Positions 17,293 through 62,800 are shown, numbered from the stretch's first letter. The stretch: 64,000 nt of DNA from Haplodiscus bocki (GCA_965655095.1 OZ296649.1:80290001-80354000); one strand, 5' to 3'. Notes: generated from the sequence alone by a model not told the origin. Numbers and translations: made by a program.

Positions 17293-17433
17293 NNNNNNNN
17301 NNNNNNNNNNNNNNNNNNNNNNNNNNNNNNNNNNNNNNNNNNNNNNNNNNNNNNNNNNNNNNNNNNNNNNNNNNNNNNNNNNNNNNNNNNNNNNNNNNNN
17401 NNNNNNNNNNNNNNNNNNNNNNNNNNNNNNNNN
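17293..17433. other. Assembly gap (141 N)
   Basis: Run of n. Confidence 1.
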
Positions 17434-32735: not shown

Positions 32736-33242
32736 TGTAAAATTTCTTGGGTTTTGTCTTTTGTTTGAAAATGGGATTCAGTCCTTTACTAGTTGGAAGA
32801 CTTTGATTTATTTTTTAGTGGCTATCTTCAGTGCGTGGTGTGAGGAAAAAAATCTGTTGAAGCTTCGAAGAATTAATTTCAGGCATACAGGCAACTATTT
32901 AGTAGCAATCCCTGAAGAGCTCTCTCTTTTAAATCTCTTTTTTATACAGCTTCATAAATTATCCAATCTATTTTTTGTCATCATGTGAAAATTATAATTC
33001 AATAAAAGTTTATACTCAATATCTCTTCTTTACATTTAATTTCCATGCGGATATTGGGTATTTGTTTCTTTTCCACTGGTTTATTGATTGTCTATTTCTC
33101 CGGATGTTAGTGATTCCGATGAGGGGAGGGGTTCCTTGTCTTTTAAACTCCAAGAAATTTAATAGCGCCAAGAATTCATGTTTTTCAAAATTAATCAAAT
33201 TAAGATCATGCTTCAAAATAAAATATTCATCAGAATATTACA
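32736..33242 (-). repeat. 3' LTR (507 bp)
   Basis: TGTAAAATTTC...GAATATTACA; direct repeat of 45397-45904 with roughly 17-18 differences by eye. Confidence 0.97.
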
Positions 33243-33324
33243 CTAGCCGACTTTAAGTTTATTTCTCCAGCTCTAGTTTTATTGGAGTAATTATTATTCA
33301 TGCTTCCGTGCAGGTTAGCTTTTC

Positions 33325-35540
33325 TTAAACGCGGTGCATTTGTCGATTGAGTTGTGCATATGTAGGTGCACTTTCTTCTCTTGCTTCCATCAGTTGAGAT
33401 TCGGGTAGGAGTAAACTTCGGTTACGCCATTGAAAATTTTCATCATTCTGTACCCGATCCAAGTGTTGGTCTTCTACCACCATTATCGGTTTGAGGGGAA
33501 TTTTTTGTTTGTCCAGTTTGTGAGAAAAGGGTTGGAATTTGTGGAGTTTTTTGTAGCGATAGAGAGCAAGCATTAGTCCCAAATGTAGTAGTGCACTAAG
33601 GATGAATACTGCAATTCCTATCATCAAATGACTTTTCCACGATATATAGTTATTAAATTGTTTCTCAAATGAGGGCTTCAACATAGTTAGTTTCTGCGCT
33701 ATAGGTTCAGCTATTTGTTGAATATTCTTTTTGTAGCCGTATTGTGGTTGGGCTTGGAGTTCCAGTTTGAGGGACTTTAGTAGTTTCATAATAGCTTCCA
33801 CTTTGGTATTGTAGTAGGGAAGTTCTTCCACTGTTGGCAATAGGCTGAACAGGTTTGCCATTGGTTGAGGCAGTTCCACTTCCAGTTTGACTGGTGGGAC
33901 TTTTGCACATGACGATAGGTCAGACCTGATTCAGATATTTTCGCCAGTTAACTGTTTACCACATTCTAGTGTTATTAAACAAATTCTACATCCTTTGACT
34001 GTTTTTGAGCCTGCCAGTGTTGTAGCATCCATATAATTTTCTTTGAAATCGAAGTTGGCCTGGGCTGAAGTTATAAGCCATATTCCATATCCCAGATTTG
34101 TTGCTTTGACTTTCAGTGGTAGTGGGACTGGGACTGTATCACAGACTTCTAATGCACCCATAATGTTTCCAAAATATAAAGTTGCGAGGCATGACGAGTC
34201 TTTATTTTCTGTTGCCAAAGTTTCATGACAAATTCGATACTTGCTTGAACCAATACATTTATCAAGTTGATCTCTCGTTACAAGCGAAGTTTCCATCAAG
34301 TTTTCTGATATTGGCAATTATTCTGCCTCCACATCCCATTTAATTGCCATGTCTTCGTCCATTTGGGGTACAGGTACCACTATTGCTTTGTACACTGTGA
34401 ATGCTGTTTGTCGTGATGCAAATGGGATTGCCATTGTCATCTAAAGACCCTCATCAAAAGTCAATACATCCAATAGTAAACGTGATTCATAATATGCCAA
34501 AAGTTCTTGTTTTGGAATGGCCAGTGTAAGTCGGTGATCGGATTTCTCCTGTGAGTCGTCAACCACTTTCAAAATTTGTTCCAAAGAGTTTGGGTAGGAG
34601 TGACATGGGGATATATTTTGAAAGTAGAGAGGGAATAGCGTTCATTATGTTCATCTGGAATGCGAATAGAGCGGCGCGATAGGCCTTGACATTGCTGTAG
34701 ACTAGCGAAAGTAGGGAAGATATTGTATCAAAATTGAAGTTCACCTGTTGTCTTGTGTATAAGAGTTGGTCGCAATTGCGCATATCGTGAATATTTTCCT
34801 GAAGTACTTGAAATTGCTTCTCGATCTTTTGCCAGTTCTCATTTTGGGTTTCTATAATTTGGTTTTGGATTTCATGAAGCAGGGCTAAATCTTTCGAGAC
34901 ACGGAAAAATTTCCCATCGGTTTCATTTGCAAGTTGTTGTAAGTTATCGCCAATGGCTGTTGCGTATTTTCCTAACTTTTCAATGTTTTGGGCATTCGTT
35001 TTGGCCTTTTCTTGGCACGAGCCAAAAATACACATAATGCCACAATCGTCTGATGCACCAAACATGATGCCTGTTCCGAATAATCCGACGACGCCAGCTA
35101 CAGCGGCTGCTATAGGTAGTGCTCTTCTAGACCTCTGATTTTTCTTGATTTCGGTACCCTTCAGGAAAGAGGATACTTCTTGTTTTATGTTAGTCAGATC
35201 TTCTTCAGCGAACACTATTTCCTTTTTTGTTTCTTTTAGAAGCCAGTCTACTTTAAACTCGTTTTCGCCTGCGTTTGTGAAAATAAGGTAACACCGACGT
35301 CGGCATTTGCCACATATTCTGTAATTCTTTTGCAACTTTGTCCAGGTTTTCAGTTAGTTGAATTTCAAATTTTGGATAGGGGACTAAGAATTGGGCGTTT
35401 ACAAACTTTTCTGCCAAAAGTATTTTTGTCTCTTCATGAAAGAATACTCCTCGTTCAAGACTACCTTTATCATCTGCTGTCACTACCATAAATAGCCAAA
35501 GTAGAATCATTGTGGGGGCTGATTCTTTTGAAGGTTGCAT
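33325..35540 (-). pseudogene. env: env: class I fusion glycoprotein (baculovirus F/errantivirus-like), disrupted
   Basis: Signal peptide MILLWLFMVVTA. Furin site RSRR followed by fusion peptide ALPIAAAVAGVVGLFGTGIMFG. Heptad repeats. Cys-rich DQLDKCIGSSKYRICHE..SSCLATLY. TM HLMIGIAVFILSALLHLGLMLALY. Several stops and frameshifts. Confidence 0.88.
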
Positions 35541-35614
35541 TATTTACTACCTTGAAATTTGGAATACTGTTGGAACACAGATGATTTGGGGGTATATTTG
35601 CAATTTAAGTTGCT

Positions 35615-35959
35615 TTAAAGTTCCTCTTCTAGATAGTCCAACAGTTCTTCTAGTTTGACTTTGAACGTTGATTCTAACTTCAATGATTTGTAGTGTTTGC
35701 TCAGGGTATCATACAGACTGTCGTATTCAATTGTGTCACTGTCAATTTCCATATAGTAGGGCTCATTGTGGGGTTTGAAGACTCCCATTCGAATGAGGGG
35801 ACAGCATTCACATTGTTGTAGTTGAATTTTATTGATATAAAGTGGGTTCTTTTCGGGTGGTGTCCACTGTAAGAGTACTTTGAATTGTAATTGAATTGGG
35901 GTAAGTTGCCAATGAACTGTAATTGTATTCTCCATATTGATCCACAGATAGGGCTTCAA
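35615..35959 (-). CDS. Accessory small protein B (CxCC), paralog of 36322-36606
   Basis: FKVLLQWTPPEKNPLYINKIQLQQCECCPLIRM...MEIDSDTIEYDSLYDTL aligns by eye with the upstream ORF. Confidence 0.7.
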   Translation of the reverse strand: MKPYLWINMENTITVHWQLTPIQLQFKVLLQWTPPEKNPLYINKIQLQQCECCPLIRMGVFKPHNEPYYMEIDSDTIEYDSLYDTLSKHYKSLKLESTFKVKLEELLDYLEEEL

Positions 35960-35989
35960 GGTATTTCTTTAATTCGATTTAGAAGGGGC

Positions 35990-36271
35990 TTAACTTAATT
36001 TCAAATTTCTCCAGCCACTCTTAGATGATTTTTTTGCCATGCAAAAAAGTTGAAATTCAGGGGCTTTCGTTTTCTTTGAGAAGGGTAATGAGTAACTGAC
36101 TGCTGGAGAACCGGTTGTAGAAAGGTTGCCGCCATAAAAAGGGAATTGTAATATCGTGAATACACATAGGGTTTTGACGGATATTACAGTTGGTGTGAGC
36201 GGGACTTCGTCGGATATTAGATTTTGTTGGTACGGTCCGGTCAGATAGGAACAGGTTGTCAGAGCTGTCAT
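35990..36271 (-). CDS. Accessory ORF, unknown (93 aa)
   Basis: ATG-initiated ORF packed tightly between the two paralogs; no recognisable motif. Confidence 0.4.
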   Translation of the reverse strand: MTALTTCSYLTGPYQQNLISDEVPLTPTVISVKTLCVFTILQFPFYGGNLSTTGSPAVSYSLPFSKKTKAPEFQLFCMAKKSSKSGWRNLKLS

Positions 36272-36321
36272 GGTTTTTGCTGGATCATGGAATGCATTTG
36301 TTAGTGTTCCAGTGGAACCAA

Positions 36322-36606
36322 TTAGGCTATTTCATTAATTTGACTTCCCATGAATTGAACCAACGGATCCAGTTCAGTCGGATGAGCAGATGTATACAGG
36401 CGTAGCAATTTGTAGAGGCTAACGAATTTCTCGTTTGTTGTGGAAATCTCTAAGATCGCTTTTTGGCCATTGTTCATGTTAGGTTCGCTGATTAAAAGTC
36501 TCAGAGGTGCACAACAGGAGCATTTTTGCCATTGAATTCGGTGTATCGTCAGCAGGGTATCTTTTCCAGGTGATTTCCACTGTAAGTTAATGTCAAATTT
36601 GTCCAT
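36322..36606 (-). CDS. Accessory small protein A (CxCC)
   Basis: FDINLQWKSPGKDTLLTIHRIQWQKCSCCAPLRL...LEISTTNEKFVSLYKLL; ATG preceded by an A-rich leader. Confidence 0.7.
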   Translation of the reverse strand: MDKFDINLQWKSPGKDTLLTIHRIQWQKCSCCAPLRLLISEPNMNNGQKAILEISTTNEKFVSLYKLLRLYTSAHPTELDPLVQFMGSQINEIA

Positions 36607-36949
36607 TTGTTGTGTTTTTGCTTTTTTTTGTCGGTTCGCACGCTGGGTAAAAAAAATGCAGAAGTGTCATTTTTTACGGGCGGATCGCTAGAGGTAATAT
36701 AGCTGTTAGTTGTTTGTTGCGGCGGATATTAATGGCGTGTTAGGTGTCCTCTGAATTTGTTTTTTGGCTGTTTTCTCAGCAATAATTTTAGTTGAACAAT
36801 GTCATTTAACCGGATATGAATTTAATTCGTTTTGTTTGCTGAGGTAATGAGTTTTCTGTCGCCGATTGCAAAGCGACCTGTTGTTTTAGGGCTTTCACGG
36901 TCTGCTGCTTTATTACATGTTTCTGAATTATGCTATTGTTTTTCAGAGA

Positions 36950-37222
36950 ATGGATTGTTCATTTGTTACTTTGTTCGCCGACGCAGTTTTAGAATGTTGC
37001 AATGATGGAACAACCGTTTGGCGGGGCTCCCGAAGGGTGAGTTTCTCTCCTCATCGTGATCCGCAGTGTCCGGGTGTAAGTTCTGGCAGTCCTCTAGCTA
37101 CTGTTTATGAACCGGAAGTGGGGAAGTTCGTCATTCTAGGGGTTTCGTTTCTGTTGTTCTTCTGCGTTCTGTTGTTCTTTTGGTTAGAGGGAAGAAAGAA
37201 CAGACAGCATGAGAGACAGTGA
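36950..37222 (+). CDS. Possible small antisense ORF with hydrophobic C-terminal segment, or upstream exon(s) of the JmjC transcript
   Basis: ATG follows TTTTCAG. FVILGVSFLLFFCVLLFFWL is hydrophobic, but the ORF contains consensus splice donors. Confidence 0.3.
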   Translation: MDCSFVTLFADAVLECCNDGTTVWRGSRRVSFSPHRDPQCPGVSSGSPLATVYEPEVGKFVILGVSFLLFFCVLLFFWLEGRKNRQHERQ

Positions 37223-37534
37223 GGGCAGACTCAGGGTTTCATTTGCAATTCATGCAGTGTAATTGCTTAATTTAGTTTGATACTATAGTTAGATGACTAT
37301 GGTTTAAGTGTAGGCGTTTAGTTAATTGGAAGTGATTTGCAAATTGAATGTGTATCTTTTGTTATTTTTTTTTGTTTTTTGAAAGAAAAAAAAATTTGCA
37401 ATTGGAATTTAATTTCACTCACTTGGTTACTGAGCATCCTTAAAAATAAGTCTATGTAGGTGCATTCTTCTGTGTGTGTGTTTCTTACAAGTCATGGGCA
37501 TGTGACTCAATGTTGCTGCTTTTCAGAGTTTAGA

Positions 37535-38356
37535 ATGGAAAAGTATAATCTACTTCTCAGTTTGTGCTCGGATAACTTCAGTGCTTTGGAGCCAACGTCT
37601 GTGGAGGAGGCTGCCAAGTTTGACAGTCCCTGTATTGTGAAGGGAGTCGGTTGTTTTTACAAGTCAGTTCCGCATCAAGAGTTAGCGGTAAATTGTACCA
37701 ATATCCGTCAGTTACTGCGGTACTTTAAAAATTGGGGCGAGGAGAAGTATAATTTATGTGCATTTCCTGAAACAAGCGTATTGACTGCACTAATGCCGCG
37801 TATTGAAAATTTGCAAAGATATGACCCATGGTTTAACAGTGCTATAATACCCGTGAGTTCAGTTCATGACCCTATCGTCCTGGTAGCTACGGGTAATTGT
37901 GTAACTGGGTGGCACAGGGATGATGATCCTCCGACAGAAGTTATTGCCTCTCTTTTGCGGGGTCGAAAAATCTGGGTTTTTGCTTCCAAAGGGTCCAGGG
38001 AGGCTGCGCAGTTACCAAGTGTAAGAGAAGCTAACAATTTTGAATATTTTATTGAAGGAGTTATTTATAAGCGATTTCGGGGTCTAAAATATTGTGTGCA
38101 AGAAGTAGGAGACACTGTTTGTTTACCTTCTCGTACTGCCCATCTGGTTTTATCGGTGGGTCCAAATGAAAGTTGGAACGTGTTATTATCTCACAACATT
38201 CGTCATTCTCCTGCTGTTGCTGCAAGATTGGAGATCAGGTGCTGGAATGTGACTAGGGGGAGCAAAGAGCGTATCCATCAGGGATTACGTCGAAAACGTA
38301 GGGGCGTCACTCGAAAAAGGTTTGGCGCTCGAAAACATCGGACCGTTCCCAAATAA
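37535..38356 (+). CDS. JmjC-domain Fe(II)/2-oxoglutarate dioxygenase, antisense inside the Gypsy element
   Basis: Uninterrupted frame (37460-38356; first ATG 37535). CVTGWHRD (HxD), LLRGRKIWVF (2OG Lys), CVQEVGDTVCLPSRTAHLVLS (distal His), basic tail RRKRRGVTRKRFGARKHR. Confidence 0.88.
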   Translation: MEKYNLLLSLCSDNFSALEPTSVEEAAKFDSPCIVKGVGCFYKSVPHQELAVNCTNIRQLLRYFKNWGEEKYNLCAFPETSVLTALMPRIENLQRYDPWFNSAIIPVSSVHDPIVLVATGNCVTGWHRDDDPPTEVIASLLRGRKIWVFASKGSREAAQLPSVREANNFEYFIEGVIYKRFRGLKYCVQEVGDTVCLPSRTAHLVLSVGPNESWNVLLSHNIRHSPAVAARLEIRCWNVTRGSKERIHQGLRRKRRGVTRKRFGARKHRTVPK

Positions 38357-38974
38357 TTCGGTTAGTTTAATATTTGTTCTAAATGATGGTTAGGGGGCTC
38401 TGTTTTTTCGTTATGTTGTGTTTTTTGATTTTTGCATAATCTGAGATCCCGTATATCCTATTGAAACAAGCTTTGTATTAGGCGTTCGGAAAGGTATGAC
38501 GTGTTGGCCTCACCCACTAATCTTAGTCAGTCGAAGTCCGCGTTCGGTCTTTTTTATAGGGTGAACATTTTTTTGTTCAAAATTTTCAATAAATATAGTT
38601 GTTTTGAAAGCAATAGGTTAGGGCTAGTATCCTACTGTAATCGGCGTTCTCTGTGCTTGATGCTGAGCTGTATAGGACTGCACTAAAGTTTTTTAGTCTC
38701 TCAGTCGAAGTGCGCGTTCATTGATGACTAGCATGGTTTTTGGGTTTTTTTGGACTTCATTGCAATACTGGTTCCATTGTTATCAATGTAGCTAGGTAGC
38801 AACCTGTCCCTGACCGTTAGATACAGAAATATTTCATTCCGCACGTTTTCCGGGGTGTTTTTTTCGTTTTTGTGAACTCTTGTACTTTTTCTGGGCTTCA
38901 GCCAGTTGGGAATTTTTTTTCTTTTTTGGGCCTTTTTCTGTCTCTTTGCCAATCTTTTTCAGTTCAATGTCTGT

Positions 38975-39421
38975 TCAGGCGTTCCGTTTCAAGACCTTAT
39001 CGTTTCTAATACAAACTGTTATACATACACTCGTCCGTTGGAAAACTTCGTGTAGAATTTTGTGCACTATTGGTGGTTGAAGTTTGTCTAGGCCACATCC
39101 AAGTTCTGGTAGTCTAATGTTTTTCACGCGATGAGCCTCAGCGTGATTGCGCATCAAGACAAGGCTGTTCCTCAGTGCATCATAGAAGGGTTTGTGGAAG
39201 TATTTTTGTTTCGTTACCAAATTGTATATCCATCTTCGTGAATAAAAGTCGTAAAATGCTAACACTGATCCCGGTGTTAGTTTTTTTCAGGCTTCTGTCT
39301 TCATTTTTGGGTACAGTCGGTCGAATCGCTTAGCAATACCTGCTACCATAAAAAAATCTGAAGAAACACAATGTCCCATGCTAGATGAAGTTCCAAAAAG
39401 GTTGTCTTCTACTATTGTCAC
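38975..39421 (-). pseudogene. TARG1/OARD1 (Poa1p-like) macrodomain at the Pol C-terminus; one in-frame stop at 39287
   Basis: VEDNLF..SMGHCVSSDFFMVAGIAKRF..WIYNLVTK..IRLPELGCGLDKL. ORFs 39287-40270 and 38975-39265 are in the same frame. Confidence 0.9.
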
Positions 39422-42400
39422 TTGCGAGGTTTTCTTAGGTGCTTGTATTTCGTTCAAGTCAGTTCTATTCTTCTTCGAAGTCGTTCCTTCTCGGGTTGCT
39501 CCTAGTCTTTGTACAAACCGCATTTGCTGGCGTTGCTGTCGACAGTTATTGAGAAGATTCACAAAGTTTCTGCCTTGTACTGATTGTCCTTGATTTGTGC
39601 GTTTACTGCTTCGGGTTTGTTTGAGTTGTTGTCCTGCCACTTCAAGAACACGTTCACCTAACCGTTTGGTCTGTTGTTCTCGTATCCTTGTTGAGCGTCT
39701 CGGTGCTGTATTTTTTTCTGCATATTCATCAGATTCTTCTGAAGAGTCCGGCAACTGAGCTGTGAGGTACGGTGGTGGTGTAAGTATTCTTCTAGGTTGT
39801 TCAGCTCTAGGAGCTTCGTGAATTGATGCCGGTTCTGCTGTCACAGCCGCGGCGTCGGGTTGATTGACTATTTGTGCTGGCAGTGGTTGTGGAGGTTGCG
39901 CTCCGAAAGAAATTGAGACTCGAACTGGGCTGTCCAAATTCGGAATTTTCTTTTCCGGCGCCACTTGGTCATTATCCAGGAGATAAGGGAGACCGTTGTC
40001 AAAGAAGTCTTGATCGCCTCTGTAACATCCCAGTGTTGTTGGGTCTGTCTGAAAATTTTCAGGGTTGATGTCCTCTATGTCTGTTACCTGATATTGAGGC
40101 TTGATTGGACGTAGTCTAATTCGGTGGACAATTTGTGTATAATTCGTTCCAGTTTTTCTGATGAGATAATTAGCGGCGGTTAAAACTCTCTCCACTCTAT
40201 ACAGAGCAAGCCATTTCTGGATAAGTTTCGGGCTGAAAGCTGATTGTTCTGTGAGTCTAGGGTTCAGCAATAAGCAATATGTGTGTTGTGAGGGGATTTG
40301 CCCTTGCCTTTTGGTCGTAATATCTCCTGTATCTGTTAAAAGATTTCGCGAGACTTTCCTTTGTATTCTGGAATTTCTTCAACATTTCATCTCTCAGTGA
40401 TTCCACAAAGTCGTAGTTGAATGCTGATTTCTGGATACATTTACTGTAGAAGCGAATATCTAAAGGCTTCACCGGATCTCGTCCATGGAAGATCACCGTT
40501 GGTGCGCATCCAATTGAGGTATGATAAGATGTGTTATGGATGAATGTTGCTAAGTTTAAGTATTTATGCCAATTTGTGAAGGTGCGGTTGCAATTTAGTT
40601 TCAAAATTCGCGTTAGTGCTGCATGTGCTCTTTCCACGACACCTATTGTTTGCGGGTTCAATGATGCATGAGATATTTTGATTTCAAGTAGTTTGGTGAG
40701 TTCATGGAAAAGTTCAGACACAAACTGTGTGCCTAAATCTGAGAGTATTTCCTGTGGTATGTAACTGTGTTGGAACATAATGGAGACTAGGGCGGTTGCC
40801 ACTGAGAGTGCACTGATTGTGGTCAGTGGGACTGCAAAAAGGTATTTAGTGAAAACATCAATAGCTTTCAGCACATACTTGTATGGTGACGATGGAAATG
40901 GTCCCAGAATGTCTATCTGCATAAGGTCGCCTGGGTAAGATTTCAATGTCGAAACCTCTTGCAGTGGTGTTTTTAGTCTCTGGGGTTGTACCTGTTTCAG
41001 TTGCAGGCACGTGGAACAGTTTCTGATACAGTCTGCAATTAATTCCACATAGTTTGGGCAATAAAAGCGTTTTCTGAATTCCTCGATGGTCCGCGTGATT
41101 CCCAAATGTCCTCCAGTTGAAGCGTTGTGTAGTCTGTACATAACTTCTTTGAGTATTGTTTTTGGTACACACAATTGTTTGTACAGCATTTTTCCATCGT
41201 GTGCGTAGTATCGTCTGTAAAGTGTTCCATCTTCTGTAAATAATCGTCGAAACTGTTTGAGGTATTTTTGTTCTTCTCCGGTAGAGTAGATGTTCGCTGT
41301 AGGTGCAGAATCACTTTCCAACCATTTGATCACTTTTGTGATCACCGAGTCAGAATTTTGTTCCTGTTTTAAGTTAGCTATTGTTGTTTCCAATTCGGGA
41401 TAGTCGTCCATTGGGTTTTTGTGCTGAGTTGCATTAATTTCTGTTGTTTTCTTCTTGTATTTCGTGATTCGTAGTTCACAGTTTGAAGTCAAATTCTGTA
41501 ACTGGTGTACGGCCTGGTCATAGTTTCCAGATTGTTTGAGTGTGATCAATGTGTTTATATCTACTACTTGAAGTAGGTCAACAGGTAAGTCATCTGCAAA
41601 GAGCTCATTGATGGTATTGTCTGGTAGCTGTGCTCGTACGTCTATTTCAATTTCTCTAATCGGGATTCTGTCTGTCAGTTTTAATTCAAGAGTTTCGTTT
41701 GGATTTTATTGCAAGCGAGATAGAAAATCTGCGGCTGCATTCGCTTTTCCTGGAATGTGTGTTACTACTATGTTGAATGCTGTAACTCTGTCAACATAAT
41801 TCCAAAGTGATGGGGGAATTGTTTCGGCTTGGAAGAATCTGGTCAAACTTTTGTTGTCAGTCAGTATGAGTACTGGTTTTTCAATTCCCCATATGAAATG
41901 AGAAAACATTTCCAAGGCAAAGTAAAGAGATAAGAATTCCTTGCAGTATATTGACATTTTTAGGTGCGCTGTATTGAAAACTTTAGATCCGAATGAGACA
42001 GGTGCATACGATTTAACAGTTTCTCCTTTGTTGATATTGACGTAGTCTTCGATCATTAGTACAAACCCGCTGGAGTGGTAACTAGCGTCACCAAGAATGG
42101 CGTATTGCAGTCCCGGTTTGGCGAGTCGAAGAGTTTGTGTTGTGGTGGTTTGGAGTTTTTCTCGTAGTACTTTAAATGCATTCTCGATTTCATCTGTAAT
42201 TTCGAAAGAGACATTTTTACGCAAAAAGTTGTAGAAGGGTATGAGGTGTTCGTTTAGGTTCGGGATGAAGCTTCGAAAGAATTGTATGAAACCTATTAGC
42301 CGTTTTACTTGTTTCACTGATTTTGGTATTTCAAGGTTTCTCAAACTTTTCGATTTTGTCTTTTTCAGGTCGTAAGCCCTCTTTAGTTATGACACTTCCA

Positions 42401-44259
42401 AGGAAACTAACTTTTTCTGATCCAAAAACACATTTTTCTGGCGATAAATTGAGTCCTGATCTGCGTAAGCATTTGAAGATAAGTCGTAAATTGGGTATGA
42501 GTTGTTCAACTGATTCCACTCCACATCCAATATCATCCATGAACTGTGTGCAAATATTTGCTGAGAGACATAGCTCTAAGTAATTTCTCACAAAAGCACT
42601 GAAGCCTGTAACTGATCTGTTCAGACCTCTAGCTAGTCTTTGGTAAGCCATAGTTCGGGAAGCAAAATTGAAAGCAAGTAGCTGGACCGAAAGAGGGTCA
42701 GCCATTTGTACACAATGGTAGGCTTGAGAGCAATCTAATTTACAAAAGATTGATTTTCCGGCGAAATGTGCTGTGGTGTCTGCCATTGTTGAAATCGGGA
42801 AATTGTTGTTATGATAATCATGTAAGAGAAGGTGGTTGATTCGGCGTAGGTCCACTAGAATTCTGAGTTCTCCATTTGGTTTGCGGTGTGCAAAGATTGG
42901 GCTACTGTATTTTGAATGATTGAGGCTTGTAATGATTCCGAAATATTGTAGGAGGGCAAGCTCTACTTGTAGTTCTTCACGTAAGTGGATCGGCGTTGGT
43001 GGGCTTTGGGTGTAGAACGGTTGGTCATGTTCTGGGGTTAGCTTCATTGAAATCTCGGAATTATATCCAACATCAAATCTATGTTTAGCAAAAATATCCG
43101 AAAATTCTATCAATAAGTCTTCAACTTGCTGTTTTTCAACCACTTTAAGTATAGATTCATTCCATTTGAATCTCTGTAGAAACTGGTTACGGTGTTCATC
43201 ATTAATGTGTGGGTCTATACTGTCTAGTTGCCTTAGCTTCTCTAGTTCGTTGTAGACACCTCTCAACACCTCTTCTCAACACCTTTCAGTGCTGTGGGGT
43301 TCTTGCATGTTTCTGGCGTTGGGAACCAGATGCTTTTGTAGTCGGGTTTCGGTCTAAGTGGTTGAGAATCTGCATTAAATTCTTCGTCAATTATCAGTTG
43401 GTTGATTTCTTTCTCAAAGTCGTCTAGATTTTTGAATTTGGCCAATGTTGGTAGTTGTGGCTCTATCGGGGTTAATGTTTCCGCTTGTTGGGGTGAGAGA
43501 AATTTAAAAAGTGCAATGTCCGAAATTCGGGGAAGAGTGATCTCATTGGTTTGGAGGTTTAAGGCAGATAAGTAAAAGTTTCCTTCAGAGTCAGTTCGTG
43601 ATAATGAAGAAGTGAGGCACAGTCCTGTTTTTTCTTCAAAACTTACTTTTGGTTTGACCATACCACATACATCAGCAAGTCGTTTGTTTTTCGTTTGGAG
43701 ATTGCATTTACCAGTGTTGTTTGTTGGTTGGGGGCAATGACGCATTTTTCCATTGTTCTGATAGTGTATTGGGGTTTTCCGGTTTTATCTGTTTGTGTTG
43801 ATATTTCGTTCAACTGAAGCGTCAAGTCTGGTAATTTCATCAGGTTTTCTCGTGGCTAGAGCTCAAAGGAGTTAATTTTGAAAAATCGGTTTCCCAAAAT
43901 AATGCTATTCGTTGTTGGGAGTACTAAAAATTGTTCTTTGAAATGGTTTTATGCTTTTGCAAAATCGAGCTGGATTTGGCCACGCACAGGTATAAGTTGT
44001 CCTGAAGCTAGTTTTACTTTATTGACTTCAGAAGGTCGTGAGATGATTGCTGTTGTTCCGAAAATTGATTTCAGGTCCTCGTAGTCCTTTTCACTGATCG
44101 CATTTGCACAGGAACCAGTATCTATCAGTGCTTTCCTTTGTTGGTTGTTAGGAAACTTCAGTGGAACATACGGTAGGACATCACCTTCAAGAGAAATGCA
44201 TGCTGTTATTTCATTTGGTTCATCCGTCGTTTCTCGTTGTTTTTCACACTGGCGTGGCT

Positions 44260-45354
44260 TCACTCGTTTTTTGGTGCGGTTTGGTATGGTATTTGTTGGT
44301 CTCTATTGGCTGGTCTCCGTTTGTTACAATCTCTTGCATAGTGGTTTGGGTAACCACAAATGTAACATATCTGTTTAGATTATGTAGTTTCCGCTATATG
44401 CTCTTGGTTGCTCGTTTGCTGGATTTGAGGTGAGTTATAGTTGGGATAGAAGCTGTAGTCCGTACGGTTTTGATTACCATTGAAAAAACCTGTTATTATT
44501 GAAGCGCCCTCGTCCTCTGTTGTTGGCATATCCTCGTCCTCTGAATCCTCGTTGATTGTTGAACCGGTAATTGCCGCGTTGTGAGGGGTTAAAACCATTG
44601 TTACTAGTAGTGGAATTTTGATGGCTTGGGAGGTTCAGAGAGTTGATTCTATTAGATAAGTCTGTTTGTTGCTGTTTCAGTTCATCTTGTTGCTGTGTAA
44701 GTTTTGTTAGTGCCCCTACTAAGTTTTCGGAAAGTGTTGAACTAACCTCATTGAAGGCAACTCTCGTCCAGTCGTCACTTGGACAAAGTTCGAAGAATAC
44801 CAATTGGCGTCTTGCAACTGTACAAAAGTCTTGCACCGTTGCTGCCTCATTTTGGTCCAGTAGTTTTCTTTTGATAAAATTTGGCATGGCGTTCGTGAAG
44901 ATCTCCTTGATTCTCCTGTTTCGCTCATTAACTGCATTGTCTAGTACCGCTTGGTTTGAACTACAATTGGTGGTAACACTTGGTCTGGGTAAGCTTGTGT
45001 TGCTTTTCTCTGCACTTGTACCAAGAAGTCTTCTGGACTACCATGCTTGTGGTCAAATTTTAAGTTGTGAAGCTGTAGTTTGTGGAGTTCTCGGAGGTTT
45101 GGGTTGCAGTAATGATTTCTCAGTGCCGTTATTGCTGCATCAAAGTCATCTCTGGTTGCTTGTGGCAATGTTCTGAAGAACTGCAGGGCTTGATCTAGTA
45201 AGTGAAGTTGAAGAAACTAGGGTCGGTTGGCATTTGGGATATTGCCAACATTGATGAGACTTTTGAGAAGACTTTCGAAATCTGGCCAGTTTTCATCGGC
45301 TTTTCCGCGGAATGGGTTGAGAGTAATATGTGGTTGTGGGTTTGCTGCTGCCAT
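44260..45354 (-). pseudogene. gag: gag with RG-rich region and CCHC zinc knuckle, disrupted
   Basis: ATG at 45354 MAAANPQPHITLNPFRG; LQFFRTLPQATRDDFDAAITALRNHY; CYICGYPNHYARDC at ~44325-44370; TGA at 44260-44262. Confidence 0.9.
44266..44272 (-). promoter_or_regulatory. -1 ribosomal frameshift slippery site A AAA AAC
   Basis: Minus strand CCA AAA AAC GAG TGA at the end of gag; the protease ORF is in the -1 frame. Confidence 0.8.
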
Positions 45355-45384
45355 CGTTTTCGAATAGTTGTATTCCTCACTTCC

Positions 45385-45396
45385 TCCTTGTCACCA
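45385..45396 (-). promoter_or_regulatory. Primer binding site, probably tRNA-Ser(GCU)
   Basis: TGGTGACAAGGA abuts the 5' LTR. It differs from the complement of a typical animal tRNA-Ser(GCU) 3' end (TGGCGACGAGGA) at two CpG transitions. Confidence 0.7.
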
Positions 45397-45904
45397 TGTA
45401 AAATTTCTTGGGTTTTGTCTTTTGTTTGAAAATGGGATTCAGTCCTTTACTAGTTGGAAGACTTTGATTTATTTTTTAGTGGCAATCTTCAGTGCGTGGT
45501 GTGAGGAAGAAAACTCTGTTGAAGCTTTGAAGAATTAATTTCAGGCATACAGGCAACTATTTAGCAGCAATCCCTGAAGAGCTCTCTCTTTTAAATCTCT
45601 TTTTTTTGCAGCTTTATAAATTATCCAATCTATTTTTTGTCATCATGCGGAAATTATAATTCATTAAAAGTTTTATACTCAATATCTCTTCTTTACATTT
45701 AATTTCCATGCGGATATTAGGTATTTGTTTCTTTTCCACTGGTTTATTGGTTGTCTATTTCTCCGGATGTTAGTGTTTCCGATGAGGGGAGGGTTCCTTG
45801 TCTTTTAAACTCCAAGAAATTTAATAGCGCCAAGATTTCATGTTTTTCAAAATTAATCAAATTAAGATCATGCTTCAAAATAAAATACTCATCAGAATAT
45901 TACA
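45397..45904 (-). repeat. 5' LTR (508 bp)
   Basis: Direct repeat of 32736-33242; flanked by the PBS and the TSD. Confidence 0.97.
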
Positions 45905-51700: not shown

Positions 51701-53367
51701 CGATTGGTAGAAGAAAGTGAAAAACAATGTTGATGGTGCTGGAGACTATATGAAAACTACTTATTCGTACCAGAAACCGATTTCAGAAAACAAGTTGAAT
51801 AAAAACATCAAGAGTAGCTTGAAGTTCGGCGTAGTTGACTGCTCAATTGAAGTACCCGAACGTTTGAGAAGAAAAATTCAGTGAATTTCCCCCTACTTTC
51901 AAGAATTGTGGAATCAATTTGGAACATATTGATCCGCACATGAAGGATTTTGCACATGAACATAACCTTCTGAAGCACCCTAGACAAATGCTGATATCGA
52001 GTTTTTATCAATAACAAGCAGCAGTATTCACACCTCTCCTTCAGTTTTAATTAGAAAAAAGTCTGGTATTGAATCAAGTTCATTGGTTTATCCAATATAC
52101 ACCAGAAAAATATCTTTCATCATATCCTTACTAGAAACCGCTTTCAGAAAACAAGTTGTCAACAGATCAAGAGCGGCCTGAAGTTTGGCGTATTTGACTG
52201 CTCAATTGAACTACCTGAACGTTTCCGAGAAAAACTCAGTGAATTTCACCCTATATTCAAGAATTGTGAAGTCAGTTTTCAGTTTGGAAAACATTGGTCC
52301 GCACAAGAAGGAATTTGCACATGAACATAATTTTCTAAAGAAACTTAGAAGAATGCTGATGTCGAATTTCTATTTCCAACGAGGACCAGTAATCACACCT
52401 CTCCTTTAGTTTTCTTTAGAAAAAGGTCTGGTATTGAACCAAATTTACTGGTTTATCCAATATACACCCGAAAAAAATTTCGAGTCTTCCGTCAACTCGG
52501 TCGTGGAAGCACGACGAGAAGAAAACAAAAACACATCTTCTTCATTTGCTGATGAGACAATGAAACTAATAGGTACCTATTCATATGGATACCAAATTAT
52601 TGACCAGTCAAAACATTCAAAGACTCAGTATCGCGTTGGAGCAGAAGTTGATCAACTAGTGAATGAACGGAATTTCAAAAACTTGAATCTGCTTCCTTCA
52701 TACATTTATGAGGTTGAAATAGTTAAGTCAAAAGTGAATCACAAAGAACCCATAATTGTTGGATTCCTCATTCTGCGGTATGCGAAACTCACAACGCTAC
52801 AACTGTTTTATGTTTTTCAACTGTTCTGTGATCCTCAAAAGTACGAGCTAATCGAAATGGATACAGACAGTCCTTATATGGGTCTAACCGAATCTAAAGT
52901 TGAAGAATCATTAGCCCAGAGACGAAACAAAAGTGAGAGATTAATCGAGAGAATGACTGTAGAGATGACTTTAAAGCCGATGAACAGTACTATTTTTTCC
53001 CCAGAAACTGTTGTCAGCAGCACTGGAAATTTGATCAGAGGACACCTGGATTTTTCAAATAATTTAGATGTACTGAGACGGTTGCTCTTTGTTCTGAAAC
53101 TTACTGCTGCTTGGATGAACCGTCGAGAATAACTAAGTTGAGTTGTAAAGGACTTAATAAAAACTCGTTGAATCATGAACCCATCAAAGAATATCTCGGT
53201 GTTGGAGGAAAAAGAAAGAGTAATAAATAACATGCAGAAGAGGTTTTCGGGTTGTTGGAAATAGTACGGTATGTACATACGAGCGGAAGGAAAATGGATT
53301 GTCTTACTTTTACCCCAAACGTATAGTACTCAGTGATGGAATTCATATCAAACCTCTCAATATTTAG
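48766..53367 (+). pseudogene. Protein-primed DNA polymerase B with N-terminal C2H2 fingers and a Vsr-like insert; many disablements
   Basis: CTRCNFPLLTFSKLSDHKRVAH finger. Exonuclease VDFES, FNSSRYD. KGFFPYEW. Motif A IDASQLYP. Insert VDGF..EVLGCYW..EIWESDW. Motif B KLIGTYSYG. Motif C MDTDS. C-terminus YPKRIVLSDGIHIKPLNI*. Confidence 0.95.
51765..52480 (+). repeat. Diverged ~360-bp tandem duplication inside polB
   Basis: AGAAACCG.TTTCAGAAAACAAGTTG at ~51772 and ~52133; TGGTTTATCCAATATACACC at ~52084 and ~52449. Confidence 0.9.
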
Positions 53368-53419
53368 TCTTTGATGCTTAATCTTTTTACATAAATATTT
53401 TTAGCGTCTACAAGTTTCA

Positions 53420-54787
53420 TTTTTCACTCTGTGTCCAATTCAATTTTTTCTTATATTTACTTCCGCGTCTTCCAGCTTGATAGACAGATATAAAGTTTTC
53501 AACTCTTCATCTCTTTCACCCATCAATAATTTGAATTTCAACTAACTGAATTCGAATGAGCTTTCTGATGGACTTCAGTAATTGATCTTTTTCACTCTCC
53601 AAGGATTAGGACTCCATCAAGTGAGAACATTGAATTTTTCCACACCCTGATGATTAGAAACTTTTTGCATAGATTACTTTTCGAGAGCATTTCTCGCTCT
53701 TCAGTGATTTACGAATAGAGAGGACATCGACGTTTTCCACACTGTAATGATCACCAATTTTTCGCATAGAGAACTTTTCGACAGCATTTTTCACTCTTCA
53801 ATGATTCACGACTCGAGTGAGTGAGAACATTGACTTTCTCAAACTCTCATAATTACAACTTCTTCCCGCATAGATGACCAATCGAGAATAATTTTTCGAC
53901 TTTTCATTGATTTTTTTGCAATTTTTTCAAACTTTTCTCATTTTTTTTGCTGTTTCTTTCATTCTTTTCAACTCTTTTCCCTTTCGATCAAGTTTTTCGC
54001 ACTTTTTTTCAACTTTTCTACACTTTTTTTTTTCAATTTTCGGCACTTTCTTTTCAATTTTTCTTCTTTAAAAATAATTTTCCATTTTTGATGATATTTC
54101 ACAACATTTTCACGTTTTTCCACCTTTTTTCGGCTTTTTATCAACTTTTTTGCACTTTTTTCAACTTTTTTTAAATTTAAAAGTAAGTTTTTCATTTTTT
54201 TGATGAATTTTCACAACTTTTTGACGCTTTTTTGCACCTTTTTTCGTTTCTTTTGCTTTTTTTTGAATTTTTTAAAAACTTTTTTTAATTTAATGCACTT
54301 TTTTCAACTTTTTTTCACTTTCGAAGCAACTCTTTCAACTTTCTGATGATTTTTCACAACTTTTCAACGCTTTTTTCCAGCTATTCTGCACGTTTTTCCA
54401 ACCATTTTGGAGTTTTCCACTTATTTGCATATTTTTTTTCAATTTTTTTACGCTTTTCCAAAGTTTTTTACACGTTAGAGCCAATTTCTCCATTTTTTGT
54501 GATGATTTTATCCAACCCTGAAGAGCTTTTTCGCACATTAGGAGCATTATTTCCATTTTTGGTGATTTAGTTCTCTGATTTATAAAATGCCTACTTTAGT
54601 TTCAGGATACAAATTGTAGAAGAAGTAAAGTAGTAGACATTGTAGCAAAGTTTGTAACATCTGCACAAAAGTTCGAATAGAAGCATAGTGCCTTGTTGGT
54701 TATACTAAGGATTATTATATACAAAAATAATCTCAACTTGAAATAAATTATGCTTTTCATTGATTTATGGATTGCTATGTGAGACAT
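53420..54787 (-). pseudogene. Decayed Polinton ORF: hydrophobic N-terminus, Lys/Glu-rich repeats, three ~33-codon Cys-containing repeats
   Basis: 54602-54787 and 54335-54556 are in frame. T-rich low complexity at 53900-54560. Three ~100-bp repeats start at ~53621, ~53720 and ~53821. Confidence 0.5.
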
Positions 54788-55469
54788 GCTACGGTTTTGT
54801 TCACTCGTGTTCCGCTGAGGAAATTCAAAGAATTTTTTTCAAATATTTCGATTGAAAAGGAATGTACTGACTGAAAAATCGAAATGCTGCAATTGCGTAT
54901 TCGCTAAATTGTGAGCTTAATCAACATCGGATGTATATTTATCAGTCCAAGACGTATCGTTGGCACGACGGTGTAAACAACAACCATTTGAAACACAATG
55001 TACGTTCGTTACAGACCGATCGTGCATTGGGTTAGCCTTGACTACAGGTCGCGGGGTTGGGGGAGGGTTCCCCACGTTTCAGGGCTTCGGAAGACAACTG
55101 AGATGGACAAAAACGACAAAGTAGGCATTTTTGAAGTTATTTCTCAGTTCTATTCATTTCAGTTCTTTTAGACCACAGTAAACGTCACTGAACCTTTCAA
55201 CTTGGATTATCACTCGAATCAAAATCGTAGGTCACTGCTTCAGCGTTCGTAACAGCTGACATTACTCGAGCAGAGTAAGCACTTTCAAAAACTACAATCC
55301 TTTGATGAGCTATTAGCCAACATAATTCTTAACAATAATTACCTTTTAATTATAACAGTATCTTTCATTTCTAACCTTTGAAAAGTCAGTACGCATTCGC
55401 CTAAATACTCGAATTAAGTACGCATAAAAAAACCCTCTGACGCTAATCAGCAAGCGGCGGAACGACTTT

Positions 55470-55619
55470 AATTCCCGGTCCGCGGATTAATAGCTCCCGT
55501 GGCGCCGCGGATACGCCCGCCGGCCTGATTTACTTTTCCAACTCCATCCGAGCAGGTTGGAATCCCACTGACAGACCCCGTCTTTTTAAACACCTAACTT
55601 CTGCTCACTTATTACTACT
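55470..55619 (-). repeat. Polinton right TIR
   Basis: Reverse complement of 26031-26180; ends ACTACT followed by TSD GAGGAA. Confidence 0.95.
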
Positions 55620-59878: not shown

Positions 59879-62800
59879 GTTGACTGCTCAATTGAAGTAC
59901 CCGAACGTTTGAGAAGAAAAATTCAGTGAATTTCCCCCTACTTTCAAGAATTGTGGAATCAATTTGGAACATATTGATCCGCACATGAAGGATTTTGCAC
60001 ATGAACATAACCTTCTGAAGCACCCTAGACAAATGCTGATATCGAGTTTTTATCAATAACAAGCAGCAGTATTCACACCTCTCCTTCAGTTTTAATTAGA
60101 AAAAAGTCTGGTATTGAATCAAGTTCATTGGTTTATCCAATATACACCAGAAAAATATCTTTCATCATATCCTTACTAGAAACCGCTTTCAGAAAACAAG
60201 TTGTCAACAGATCAAGAGCGGCCTGAAGTTTGGCGTATTTGACTGCTCAATTGAACTACCTGAACGTTTCCGAGAAAAACTCAGTGAATTTCACCCTATA
60301 TTCAAGAATTGTGAAGTCAGTTTTCAGTTTGGAAAACATTGGTCCGCACAAGAAGGAATTTGCACATGAACATAATTTTCTAAAGAAACTTAGAAGAATG
60401 CTGATGTCGAATTTCTATTTCCAACGAGGACCAGTAATCACACCTCTCCTTCAGTTTTAATTAGAAAAAAGTCTGGTATTGAATCAAGTTCATTGGTTTA
60501 TCCAATATACACCAGAAAAATATCTTTCATCATATCCTTACTAGAAACCGCTTTCAGAAAACAAGTTGTCAACAGATCAAGAGCGGCCTGAAGTTTGGCG
60601 TATTTGACTGCTCAATTGAACTACCTGAACGTTTCCGAGAAAAACTCAGTGAATTTCACCCTATATTCAAGAATTGTGAAGTCAGTTTTCAGTTTGGAAA
60701 ACATTGGTCCGCACAAGAAGGAATTTGCACATGAACATAATTTTCTAAAGAAACTTAGAAGAATGCTGATGTCGAATTTCTATTTCCAACGAGGACCAGT
60801 AATCACACCTCTCCTTTAGTTTTCTTTAGAAAAAGGTCTGGTATTGAACCAAATTTACTGGTTTATCCAATATACACCCGAAAAAAATTTCGAGTCTTCC
60901 GTCAACTCGGTCGTGGAAGCACGACGAGAAGAAAACAAAAACACATCTTCTTCATTTGCTGATGAGACAATGAAACTAATAGGTACCTATTCATATGGAT
61001 ACCAAATTATTGACCAGTCAAAACATTCAAAGACTCAGTATCGCGTTGGAGCAGAAGTTGATCAACTAGTGAATGAACGGAATTTCAAAAACTTGAATCT
61101 GCTTCCTTCATACATTTATGAGGTTGAAATAGTTAAGTCAAAAGTGAATCACAAAGAACCCATAATTGTTGGATTCCTCATTCTGCGGTATGCGAAACTC
61201 ACAACGCTACAACTGTTTTATGTTTTTCAACTGTTCTGTGATCCTCAAAAGTACGAGCTAATCGAAATGGATACAGACAGTCCTTATATGGGTCTAACCG
61301 AATCTAAAGTTGAAGAATCATTAGCCCAGAGACGAAACAAAAGTGAGAGATTAATCGAGAGAATGACTGTAGAGATGACTTTAAAGCCGATGAACAGTAC
61401 TATTTTTTCCCCAGAAACTGTTGTCAGCAGCACTGGAAATTTGATCAGAGGACACCTGGATTTTTCAAATAATTTAGATGTACTGAGACGGTTGCTCTTT
61501 GTTCTGAAACTTACTGCTGCTTGGATGAACCGTCGAGAATAACTAAGTTGAGTTGTAAAGGACTTAATAAAAACTCGTTGAATCATGAACCCATCAAAGA
61601 ATATCTCGGTGTTGGAGGAAAAAGAAAGAGTAATAAATAACATGCAGAAGAGGTTTTCGGGTTGTTGGAAATAGTACGGTATGTACATACGAGCGGAAGG
61701 AAAATGGATTGTCTTACTTTTACCCCAAACGTATAGTACTCAGTGATGGAATTCATATCAAACCTCTCAATATTTAGTCTTTGATGCTTAATCTTTTTAC
61801 ATAAATATTTTTAGCGTCTACAAGTTTCATTTTTCACTCTGTGTCCAATTCAATTTTTTCTTATATTTACTTCCGCGTCTTCCAGCTTGATAGACAGATA
61901 TAAAGTTTTCAACTCTTCATCTCTTTCACCCATCAATAATTTGAATTTCAACTAACTGAATTCGAATGAGCTTTCTGATGGACTTCAGTAATTGATCTTT
62001 TTCACTCTCCAAGGATTAGGACTCCATCAAGTGAGAACATTGAATTTTTCCACACCCTGATGATTAGAAACTTTTTGCATAGATTACTTTTCGAGAGCAT
62101 TTCTCGCTCTTCAGTGATTTACGAATAGAGAGGACATCGACGTTTTCCACACTGTAATGATCACCAATTTTTCGCATAGAGAACTTTTCGACAGCATTTT
62201 TCACTCTTCAATGATTCACGACTCGAGTGAGTGAGAACATTGACTTTCTCAAACTCTCATAATTACAACTTCTTCCCGCATAGATGACCAATCGAGAATA
62301 ATTTTTCGACTTTTCATTGATTTTTTTGCAATTTTTTCAAACTTTTCTCATTTTTTTTGCTGTTTCTTTCATTCTTTTCAACTCTTTTCCCTTTCGATCA
62401 AGTTTTTCGCACTTTTTTTCAACTTTTCTACACTTTTTTTTTTTCAATTTTCGGCACTTTCTTTTCAATTTTTCTTCTTTAAAAATAATTTTCCATTTTT
62501 GATGATATTTCACAACATTTTCACGTTTTTCCACCTTTTTTCGGCTTTTTATCAACTTTTTTGCACTTTTTTCAACTTTTTTTAAATTTAAAAGTAAGTT
62601 TTTCATTTTTTTGATGAATTTTCACAACTTTTTGACGCTTTTTTGCACCTTTTTTCGTTTCTTTTGCTTTTTTTTGAATTTTTTAAAAACTTTTTTTAAT
62701 TTAATGCACTTTTTTCAACTTTTTTTCACTTTCGAAGCAACTCTTTCAACTTTCTGATGATTTTTCACAACTTTTCAACGCTTTTTTCCAGCTATTCTGC

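Follow-up and report, generated by a model that had tools for sequence, protein, structure and literature searches.

An envelope-bearing Ty3/gypsy-type element whose family carries a TARG1-like macrodomain and a JmjC-like gene

Can an LTR retroelement that already carries an envelope gene also encode enzymes that resemble erasers of host protein modifications, and, if so, are these genes a property of the element's family or accidents of a single insertion? This question is raised by positions 32736-45904 of a 64,000-nucleotide stretch of Haplodiscus bocki DNA (GCA_965655095.1 OZ296649.1:80290001-80354000), hereafter the window. A sequence-only reading of the window proposed that a single element bounded by LTRs and target-site duplications holds gag, a pol with a C-terminal macrodomain, an accessory block of about 3.4 kb with an antisense JmjC gene and three small sense ORFs, and a fusion-type env. 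We found that this observation holds, although the copy itself is decayed.

To establish the boundaries of the element, we aligned its two LTRs, which share 491 matches with 15 mismatches and 3 gap columns (97.0% identity), and found that their ends coincide exactly with the proposed interval. Both LTRs begin TGTAA and end TTACA, the same pentamer flanks the element on both sides, and a primer-binding-site-like 18-mer starting TGG lies directly inside the 5' LTR, although a search for tRNA genes found none in the window. The element is about 13.2 kb long, lies on the minus strand, and contains Pfam-supported reverse transcriptase, RNase H and integrase domains in that order, with a protease motif upstream. 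The accessory block spans the interval between the end of the macrodomain and the env signal peptide. The positions of all features are collected in Table 1.

Table 1. Features of the element and its flanks, in window coordinates.
Feature	Start	End	Strand	Description
Target-site duplication, left copy	32731	32735	.	ACATC
3' LTR in the element's orientation	32736	33242	-	507 bp
env	33325	35540	-	F-type layout; interrupted, about 2 frame changes and 1 in-frame stop
env membrane anchor	33559	33627	-	23 hydrophobic residues, followed by a cytoplasmic tail
Furin-like site and fusion-peptide-like stretch	35054	35134	-	RSRR followed by a 23-residue hydrophobic stretch
env signal-peptide-like N-terminus	35475	35540	-
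Small sense ORF c	35615	35959	-	114 aa, intact; paralogue of ORF a (33% identity over 66 aa, E 1e-10)
Small sense ORF b	35990	36271	-	93 aa, intact; no match in the searches
Small sense ORF a	36322	36606	-	94 aa, intact; paralogue of ORF c, with a shared CxCC motif
ORF upstream of the JmjC-like gene	36917	37222	+	101 aa, hydrophobic tail; no family match
Antisense JmjC-like gene	37535	38356	+	Intact, 273 aa from the ATG shared with relatives; GTG start called by the ORF finder at 37460; basic C-terminal tail
JmjC domain match	37889	38173	+	HxD at 37913-37921, Lys at 37967-37969, distal His at 38141-38143
AATAAA	38588	38593	+	About 230 nt downstream of the JmjC stop codon; possible polyadenylation signal, by sequence reading only
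pol	38975	44263	-	Protease, RT, RNase H, integrase, linker, macrodomain; interrupted, about 4 frame changes and 4 in-frame stops, one of them inside the macrodomain
TARG1/OARD1-like macrodomain	39014	39442	-	C-terminus of Pol; interrupted once in this copy, uninterrupted in sibling copies
Linker between integrase and macrodomain	39443	40105	-	Low-complexity, Pro/Gln/Ser-rich; conserved at 38-45% in relatives
Integrase C-terminal SH3-like stretch	40106	40201	-	Weak Integrase_p58_C match
Integrase zinc-binding and catalytic core domains	40665	41168	-	Pfam Integrase_H2C2 and rve
RNase H domain	41790	42197	-	Pfam RT_RNaseH and RT_RNaseH_2
Reverse transcriptase domain	42394	42885	-	Pfam RVT_1, E 1e-18
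Aspartic protease motif region	44066	44167	-	DTG type; weak Asp_protease matches
gag	44474	45354	-	Assigned by position only; RG-rich C-terminal part; interrupted, about 1 frame change and 1 in-frame stop
Primer-binding-site-like 18-mer	45379	45396	-	Starts TGG
5' LTR in the element's orientation	45397	45904	-	508 bp, TG..CA ends
Target-site duplication, right copy	45905	45909	.	ACATC

Examination of the reading frames required several qualifications to the sequence-only reading. Gag, pol and env are all interrupted in this copy, and its description as potentially infectious therefore does not apply here. The counts of interruptions are rough ones taken from the chain of ORFs, and one of the frame changes may be the usual gag-pol shift. 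For gag, open frames are present in the expected place upstream of pol, but no profile matched them. The env of this copy possesses the signal peptide, cleavage site, fusion peptide and membrane anchor expected of an F-type layout, and a low-confidence structural model contains a long predicted helix at its centre. However, no env piece of this copy matches any Pfam family by itself and fold searches returned nothing. Among 30 env relatives only two match Pfam Baculo_F, with 25.1 and 25.8 bits against a cut-off of 24.1, and these are 86-91% identical to the window's env piece.

We next asked whether the macrodomain is a genuine part of Pol. Both of its halves in this copy hit human TARG1/OARD1 (C6orf130) first in the PDB (E 3e-15 and E 0.01; structures 4j5q, 2l8r, 2lgr and 2eee), and two uninterrupted relatives in the protein library, P0020 and P0235, align over the whole TARG1 domain (E 3e-18 and 7e-22). 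The fusion to Pol is unbroken in sibling copies, including P0332, a single 957-aa ORF with Integrase_H2C2, rve and Macro, and it is present in relatives down to about 37% identity. In P0334, from a lineage about 50% identical, the domain passes the Pfam Macro cut-off behind an integrase C-terminal match. A Lys and an Asp lying 41 residues apart align with TARG1 Lys84 and acidic residue 125, which form the catalytic dyad (PMC7050489), and are at least 90% conserved in 14 relatives. Whereas TARG1 is a free-standing cellular protein of about 150 aa, the domain here is the C-terminal module of a retroelement Pol, and its hydrolase activity is predicted from sequence alone. A further Ty3/gypsy-type Pol in the protein library, the 1106-aa P0036, also contains a TARG1-like macrodomain, but it sits between RNase H and integrase and the RT of P0036 is only about 27% identical; P0036 is a separate lineage and perhaps a separate acquisition.

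The antisense gene encodes a divergent JmjC-like protein. The window ORF scores 23.4 bits against the Pfam JmjC cut-off of 24 (E 8.5e-5), and JmjC is the only Pfam family hit, over nearly the whole model, in 14 of 17 relatives and in 10 of 10 in a second set, four of these being above the curated cut-off (25.1-26.4 bits). Residues H152, D154, K170 and H228, which correspond to the metal triad and a 2-oxoglutarate-binding lysine, are invariant or at least 90% conserved in relatives at 37-95% identity, although the assignment of K170 to 2-oxoglutarate binding rests on its spacing. Sequence searches found no solved JmjC structure, and an AlphaFold model had a mean pLDDT of 36.8, too poor for a fold search with it to be meaningful. 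The weakness of this match, together with the fact that the ALC1-like macrodomain class contains readers as well as erasers (PMC7050489), leaves room for the possibility that the JmjC-like protein is a cupin-fold protein without oxygenase activity, such as a binding or regulatory protein, and that the macrodomain is an ADP-ribose reader. We consider this improbable, given that the metal and 2-oxoglutarate ligand positions and the TARG1 catalytic pair are conserved and that TARG1, not a reader, is the best hit.

The sequence-only reading had itself specified that other copies lacking the accessory block would count against it, and we examined where homologues of JmjC, env and Pol-macro occur. 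In the family at least 90% identical, all three genes lie on contigs of 118130, 198678 and 101460 bases, and five of six JmjC copies share a contig with env or Pol-macro. In a lineage about 50% identical, 4 of 6 JmjC contigs also hold Pol-macro. Moreover, JmjC and env identities to the window co-vary (Spearman 0.92, n=8). This linkage is at contig level only, on contigs of 30-640 kb that were equated by their size in database tables rather than by reading their DNA. Together with the opposite strand of the gene, this leaves open, as a remote alternative, that the JmjC-like gene belongs to a separate repeat or host gene family that happens to lie in or near these elements and is a nested insertion here. 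Against this, co-location recurs in two diverged lineages, no direct or inverted terminal repeats, target duplication or other termini of a nested insertion flank the block in the window, and the element's strand-biased composition runs through it. On the repeated contig-level linkage, the block is therefore not a one-off insertion.

A second alternative is that the accessory genes are passengers, host TARG1-like and JmjC-like sequences that were transduced by an ancestral element and are copied along without serving its replication or survival. LTR elements do capture host ORFs (PMC5408684), this copy has a stop in the macrodomain, some relatives are fragments, and no functional data bear on the question. 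By contrast, the catalytic Lys/Asp of the macrodomain and the HxD..K..H of the JmjC domain are kept at 37-60% identity, many JmjC relatives keep full-length ORFs of 255-300 aa, full-length ORFs persist in diverged lineages, and the Pol-macro fusion stays in frame across a fast-evolving linker. We consequently regard the passenger explanation as unlikely, though it is the strongest of the alternatives.

To place the element among known systems, we compared it to those with the closest organization. Env-carrying Ty3/gypsy elements with F-type env (baculovirus F / paramyxovirus F-like) are already described across Metazoa (Chary and Hayashi, eLife 2026, PMC13524379) and likewise are multi-copy LTR elements with gag (here assigned by position only), then pol (PR-RT-RH-IN), then env; the text of that study mentions no macro, JmjC, accessory or antisense gene. 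Orchid Ty3/gypsy elements have fixed an extra ORF for an Fe(II)/2-oxoglutarate oxygenase, an AlkB-type m6A RNA demethylase proposed to counter host surveillance (PMC9289625), but in a plant host and without env or a macrodomain, whereas here the family is JmjC and the gene is antisense. Plant Retand Gypsy elements regularly carry antisense ORFs downstream of pol, which encode a TRP28 domain of unknown function (PMC11963269), and rotifer LTR elements capture extra ORFs (PMC5408684). The premise of the sequence-only reading that accessory or antisense genes are typical of vertebrate complex retroviruses and not of Metaviridae is thus too strong. Complex retroviruses such as HTLV-1, with its antisense gene HBZ, do share the layout of accessory ORFs besides gag, pol and env, but this is a resemblance of organization and not of descent, and retroviral antisense proteins are regulators rather than enzymes; two of the env relatives point to Baculo_F, the errantivirus type. 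What the present element shares with the Retand elements and with such retroviruses is a conserved protein-coding gene on the strand opposite to gag-pol, downstream of pol, and no sequence relation was seen. Lastly, coronavirus Mac1, alphavirus nsP3 and hepatitis E virus provide a functional analogy, as they encode ADP-ribosylhydrolases inside replicase polyproteins that are thought to counter host PARPs. Those are MacroD-type domains of RNA viruses, none of which came back as a hit here, whereas the present domain is of TARG1/ALC1 type, in a reverse-transcribing element, and placed after integrase. The combination of macrodomain and JmjC cargo was not found in the literature searched.

Overall, the interpretation offered by the sequence-only reading is partly supported. 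We take as shown that the locus is a dead copy, inserted moderately long ago, of a multi-copy, env-carrying Ty3/gypsy-type endogenous retrovirus (errantivirus-like, with an F-type env layout), and that, with linkage in other copies resting on contig co-location, its family carries a TARG1/OARD1-type macrodomain as the last domain of Pol after a linker of about 220 residues, a separate JmjC-like gene, in this copy antisense between pol and env, and small sense-strand ORFs, two of which are old paralogues. Everything concerning activity, expression and targets is inferred, and the proposed anti-silencing and anti-ADP-ribosylation kit is a reasonable hypothesis with no direct evidence here. In the explanation we favor with moderate confidence, the macrodomain would travel in the particle with integrase as part of Gag-Pol and act as an ADP-ribosylhydrolase, removing host PARP-type ADP-ribose from element proteins or from nucleic-acid ends during reverse transcription and integration. 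The JmjC protein would be made from its own antisense transcript and, having a basic, nuclear-targeting-like tail, would act as an Fe(II)/2-oxoglutarate oxygenase on a host or element substrate, for which removal of repressive lysine methylation at the provirus is the most attractive, albeit unproven, guess. In this view, both enzymes were most likely captured from host genes and kept because they help the element against host restriction.

A broader reading, which we hold only tentatively and judge less likely than not, is that a long-lived lineage of animal env-carrying Ty3/gypsy endogenous retroviruses stably encodes two host-derived eraser enzymes, a TARG1-type ADP-ribosylhydrolase delivered with integrase and an antisense-encoded JmjC oxygenase. 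Both would act as counter-defences, against PARP-based restriction and against chromatin or other methyl- or hydroxyl-mark-based silencing, which would make this a retroelement with its own anti-restriction enzyme set.

To define the limits of the element, we aligned its two LTRs, which gave 491 matches, 15 mismatches and 3 gap columns (97.0% identity), and found that both start with TGTAA and end with TTACA and that the pentamer ACATC flanks the element on both sides. An 18-mer starting TGG, as expected of a primer-binding site, lies directly inside the 5' LTR, and no tRNA and no Rfam family was found in the window. The boundaries proposed in the sequence-only reading are exact, and a search of the remainder of the window returned no second copy of the element. 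The window does contain other repeats: long-period direct repeats (about 1.8 kb, 75-82% identical) fill its first 7 kb in a stretch of only about 30% GC, and a 3.8-kb direct duplication at 98.5% identity runs to its end. Each copy of this duplication carries a 232-aa ORF without a Pfam match, and the two copies could represent long LTRs of another element or a segmental duplication.

Coordinates of the element and of other features in the window
Feature	Position	Strand	Description
LTR element	32736-45904	-	Single element bounded by two LTRs
LTR	32736-33242	-	
LTR	45397-45904	-	
JmjC-like ORF	37460-38356	+	298 aa; most likely start at the ATG at 37535
Upstream ORF	36917-37222	+	101 aa, hydrophobic tail; upstream of the JmjC-like gene on the same strand
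Basic ORF	38728-38952	-	74 aa, just downstream of the macrodomain on the sense strand
Long-period direct repeats	6-6938		
Run of N	17293-17433		141 N
Direct duplication, first copy	51762-55589		
Direct duplication, second copy	60168-64000		
ORF in first duplication copy	52434-53132	+	232 aa
ORF in second duplication copy	60844-61542	+	232 aa
Tandem array	59880-60885		365-bp array

Pfam searches of the element identified RVT_1 (E 1e-18), RT_RNaseH and RT_RNaseH_2, and Integrase_H2C2 plus rve, in that order on the minus strand, and a DTG-type protease motif lies upstream. By contrast, gag is assigned by position only, because its pieces matched no profile, and Pfam likewise returned no match for the three small minus-strand ORFs, the plus-strand 101-aa ORF, the env pieces of this copy or the flanking ORFs. 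The copy is decayed. Rough counts from the chain of open frames give 1 frame change and 1 in-frame stop in gag, 4 frame changes and 4 in-frame stops in pol including the macrodomain, and 2 frame changes and 1 in-frame stop in env, although one frame change may be the normal gag-pol shift and the counts depend on which open frames are taken as gene pieces. The JmjC-like ORF and the three small ORFs are uninterrupted; however, with 3% LTR divergence and an ORF of only 0.9 kb, an intact JmjC-like gene is not in itself significant.

We next examined the macrodomain at the end of Pol. In this copy, the C-terminal half hits human OARD1/TARG1 chains with an E-value of 3e-15 and the N-terminal half hits the same chains first, with an E-value of 0.01, whereas Pfam Macro is only a weak match for the pieces. 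Because TARG1 is the best hit, we rejected the possibility that this is a MacroD-type macrodomain. In relatives from the protein library, the domain is whole and in frame with Pol. P0235, a 552-aa library protein that is 94% identical and has 11 members, possesses an integrase C-terminal match, the linker and a full TARG1-like domain (E 7e-22), and P0332, a 957-aa protein from the same cluster, contains Integrase_H2C2, rve and Macro in one ORF. Two further library proteins, P0020 and P0021, share the linker at 38-45% identity and have an uninterrupted macrodomain, P0334 passes the Macro cut-off behind an integrase C-terminal match, and P0025, which is 37% identical, has the same layout. The residues that align with TARG1 Lys84 and residue 125 lie 41 apart, as in the human chains, and are at least 90% conserved in 14 relatives. 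This catalytic dyad is described in a review that writes Glu125 (PMC7050489), whereas the human chains aligned here show Asp at that position.

A search of 1.8 billion representatives gave 1645 hits, of which the closest are 57-62% identical and are Pol-tail fragments, while free-standing proteins of about 150 aa, such as the library protein P0024, are near 49% identical. This is consistent with capture of a host TARG1-type gene. A distant 1106-aa Ty3/gypsy-type Pol in the library, P0036, carries a TARG1-like macrodomain between RNase H and integrase, and its RT is only about 27% identical to that of the window, indicating that Pol-macro fusions exist in more than one layout. Just downstream of the macrodomain in the window, the short and very basic 74-aa ORF has a faint SWIRM match (E 0.07) that is probably not significant.

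The plus-strand ORF between pol and env most likely starts at an ATG that its relatives share. Its only Pfam match is JmjC (E 8.5e-5), which covers model positions 6-109 of 114 but scores 23.4 bits against a cut-off of 24. Sixteen homologues of 37-95% identity exist, 14 of 17 family members match JmjC, and in a second set 10 of 10 match JmjC with four exceeding the cut-off at 25.1-26.4 bits. H152, D154, K170 and H228 are invariant or nearly so, and their spacing fits the HxD..K..H pattern of JmjC enzymes. Despite this, PDB sequence searches with the ORF, its profile and two relatives reached no solved JmjC structure, and an AlphaFold model built with 17 relatives had a mean pLDDT of 36.8, which was too poor to test the fold and rendered its fold search meaningless. 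Overall, we consider it probable that the gene encodes a JmjC-type cupin oxygenase, an assignment inferred from sequence alone. By sequence reading only, the C-terminal tail is strongly basic, an AATAAA lies about 230 nt after the stop codon and a pyrimidine tract ending in AG precedes the ATG. GT and AG dinucleotides around the 101-aa ORF upstream could mark an intron in the 5' part of a JmjC transcript, although no tool predicted one.

To explore whether the accessory block is a one-off insertion in this copy, a possibility that the sequence-only reading had named as grounds for its own refutation, we examined whether JmjC, env and Pol-macro homologues are encoded on the same database contigs, taking contigs of equal size in the protein tables as a proxy for the same contig and naming them here by their size in bases. 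In the closest family, at least 90% identical, JmjC copies lie on six contigs, three of which (118130, 198678 and 101460) also encode env and Pol-macro members, while 81885 encodes Pol-macro and 214591 encodes an env that is 88% identical. In a lineage about 50% identical, 4 of 6 JmjC contigs also encode Pol-macro members, and there are further pairs. Eight JmjC/env contig pairs show co-varying identity to the window (Spearman 0.92, p 0.001), and eight shared contigs is very unlikely by chance for any plausible number of contigs. Within the window, no terminal repeats or target duplication flank the JmjC block and the strand-biased composition of the element continues through it. Together, these data refute a one-off insertion and indicate that the combination is a family trait at the level of contigs, a level that does not reveal order or orientation in other copies.

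Of the three small minus-strand ORFs, the first and third are paralogues that share 33% identity over 66 residues (E 1e-10) and a CxCC motif, yet only traces of DNA similarity remain, 713 bp apart. An old duplication with conservation at the protein level suggests that these are real genes.

Downstream of these ORFs, the env frame chain comprises a signal-peptide-like start, an RSRR site followed by 23 hydrophobic residues, a predicted helix of about 80 residues, a Cys-rich part, and a 23-residue membrane anchor followed by a tail. Among its 58 homologues, two that are 86-91% identical and extend into the Cys-rich part pass Pfam Baculo_F over about 250 residues, although only 2 of 30 relatives match this family. 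Structure prediction of the largest env piece with 30 relatives gave a pLDDT of 55.6 with mostly long helices, and fold searches with it in the PDB and BFVD were empty. On this basis we regard an F-type env as probable.

Env-carrying Ty3/gypsy elements with F-type or gB-type env are already described across Metazoa, in a study whose text mentions no macro, JmjC, accessory or antisense genes (PMC13524379). Plant Retand elements carry antisense ORFs (PMC11963269), orchid Gypsy elements carry an active AlkB demethylase ORF (PMC9289625) and rotifer LTR elements capture extra ORFs (PMC5408684), and the premise of the sequence-only reading that accessory genes between pol and env or antisense genes are not typical of Metaviridae is therefore too strong. 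Literature searches aimed at macrodomain or JmjC cargo found no paper describing either in an LTR retroelement, though these did not extend to Repbase, Dfam or GyDB and a catalogue entry cannot be excluded. The base architecture of Gypsy plus F-type env is already known, and the macrodomain and JmjC-like cargo is what sets this element apart from those in the papers found.

Taken together, the element first noticed from sequence alone is real, and the domain calls made for it largely hold. The accompanying interpretation, a retroelement lineage with its own anti-silencing and anti-ADP-ribosylation kit, is only partly supported: our analysis demonstrates the structure of the element, the decay of this now dead copy and the contig-level association of its cargo, whereas the enzymatic activities of the macrodomain and the JmjC-like protein, and any role for either in the element's biology, are inferred. 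We hold with moderate confidence that the locus is a decayed copy of an env-bearing family whose two putative enzymes, most likely captured from host genes, would help it against host restriction, while the stronger reading, that a long-lived lineage stably encodes both as a counter-defence set, remains possible but unlikely on present evidence.

Extra enzymatic domains are rarely fixed in LTR retroelements, and when they are they point to the host defences that the element faces. Because the base architecture is already known, the interest of this family lies in its cargo and in the conservation of that cargo. A Pol-borne TARG1-type macrodomain would suggest that ADP-ribosylation restricts reverse-transcribing elements in animals, as it does RNA viruses, and would also give a natural handle on which step is targeted. 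Similarly, a family-borne JmjC oxygenase would be an animal counterpart of the plant Gypsy AlkB demethylase and of transposon anti-silencing factors.
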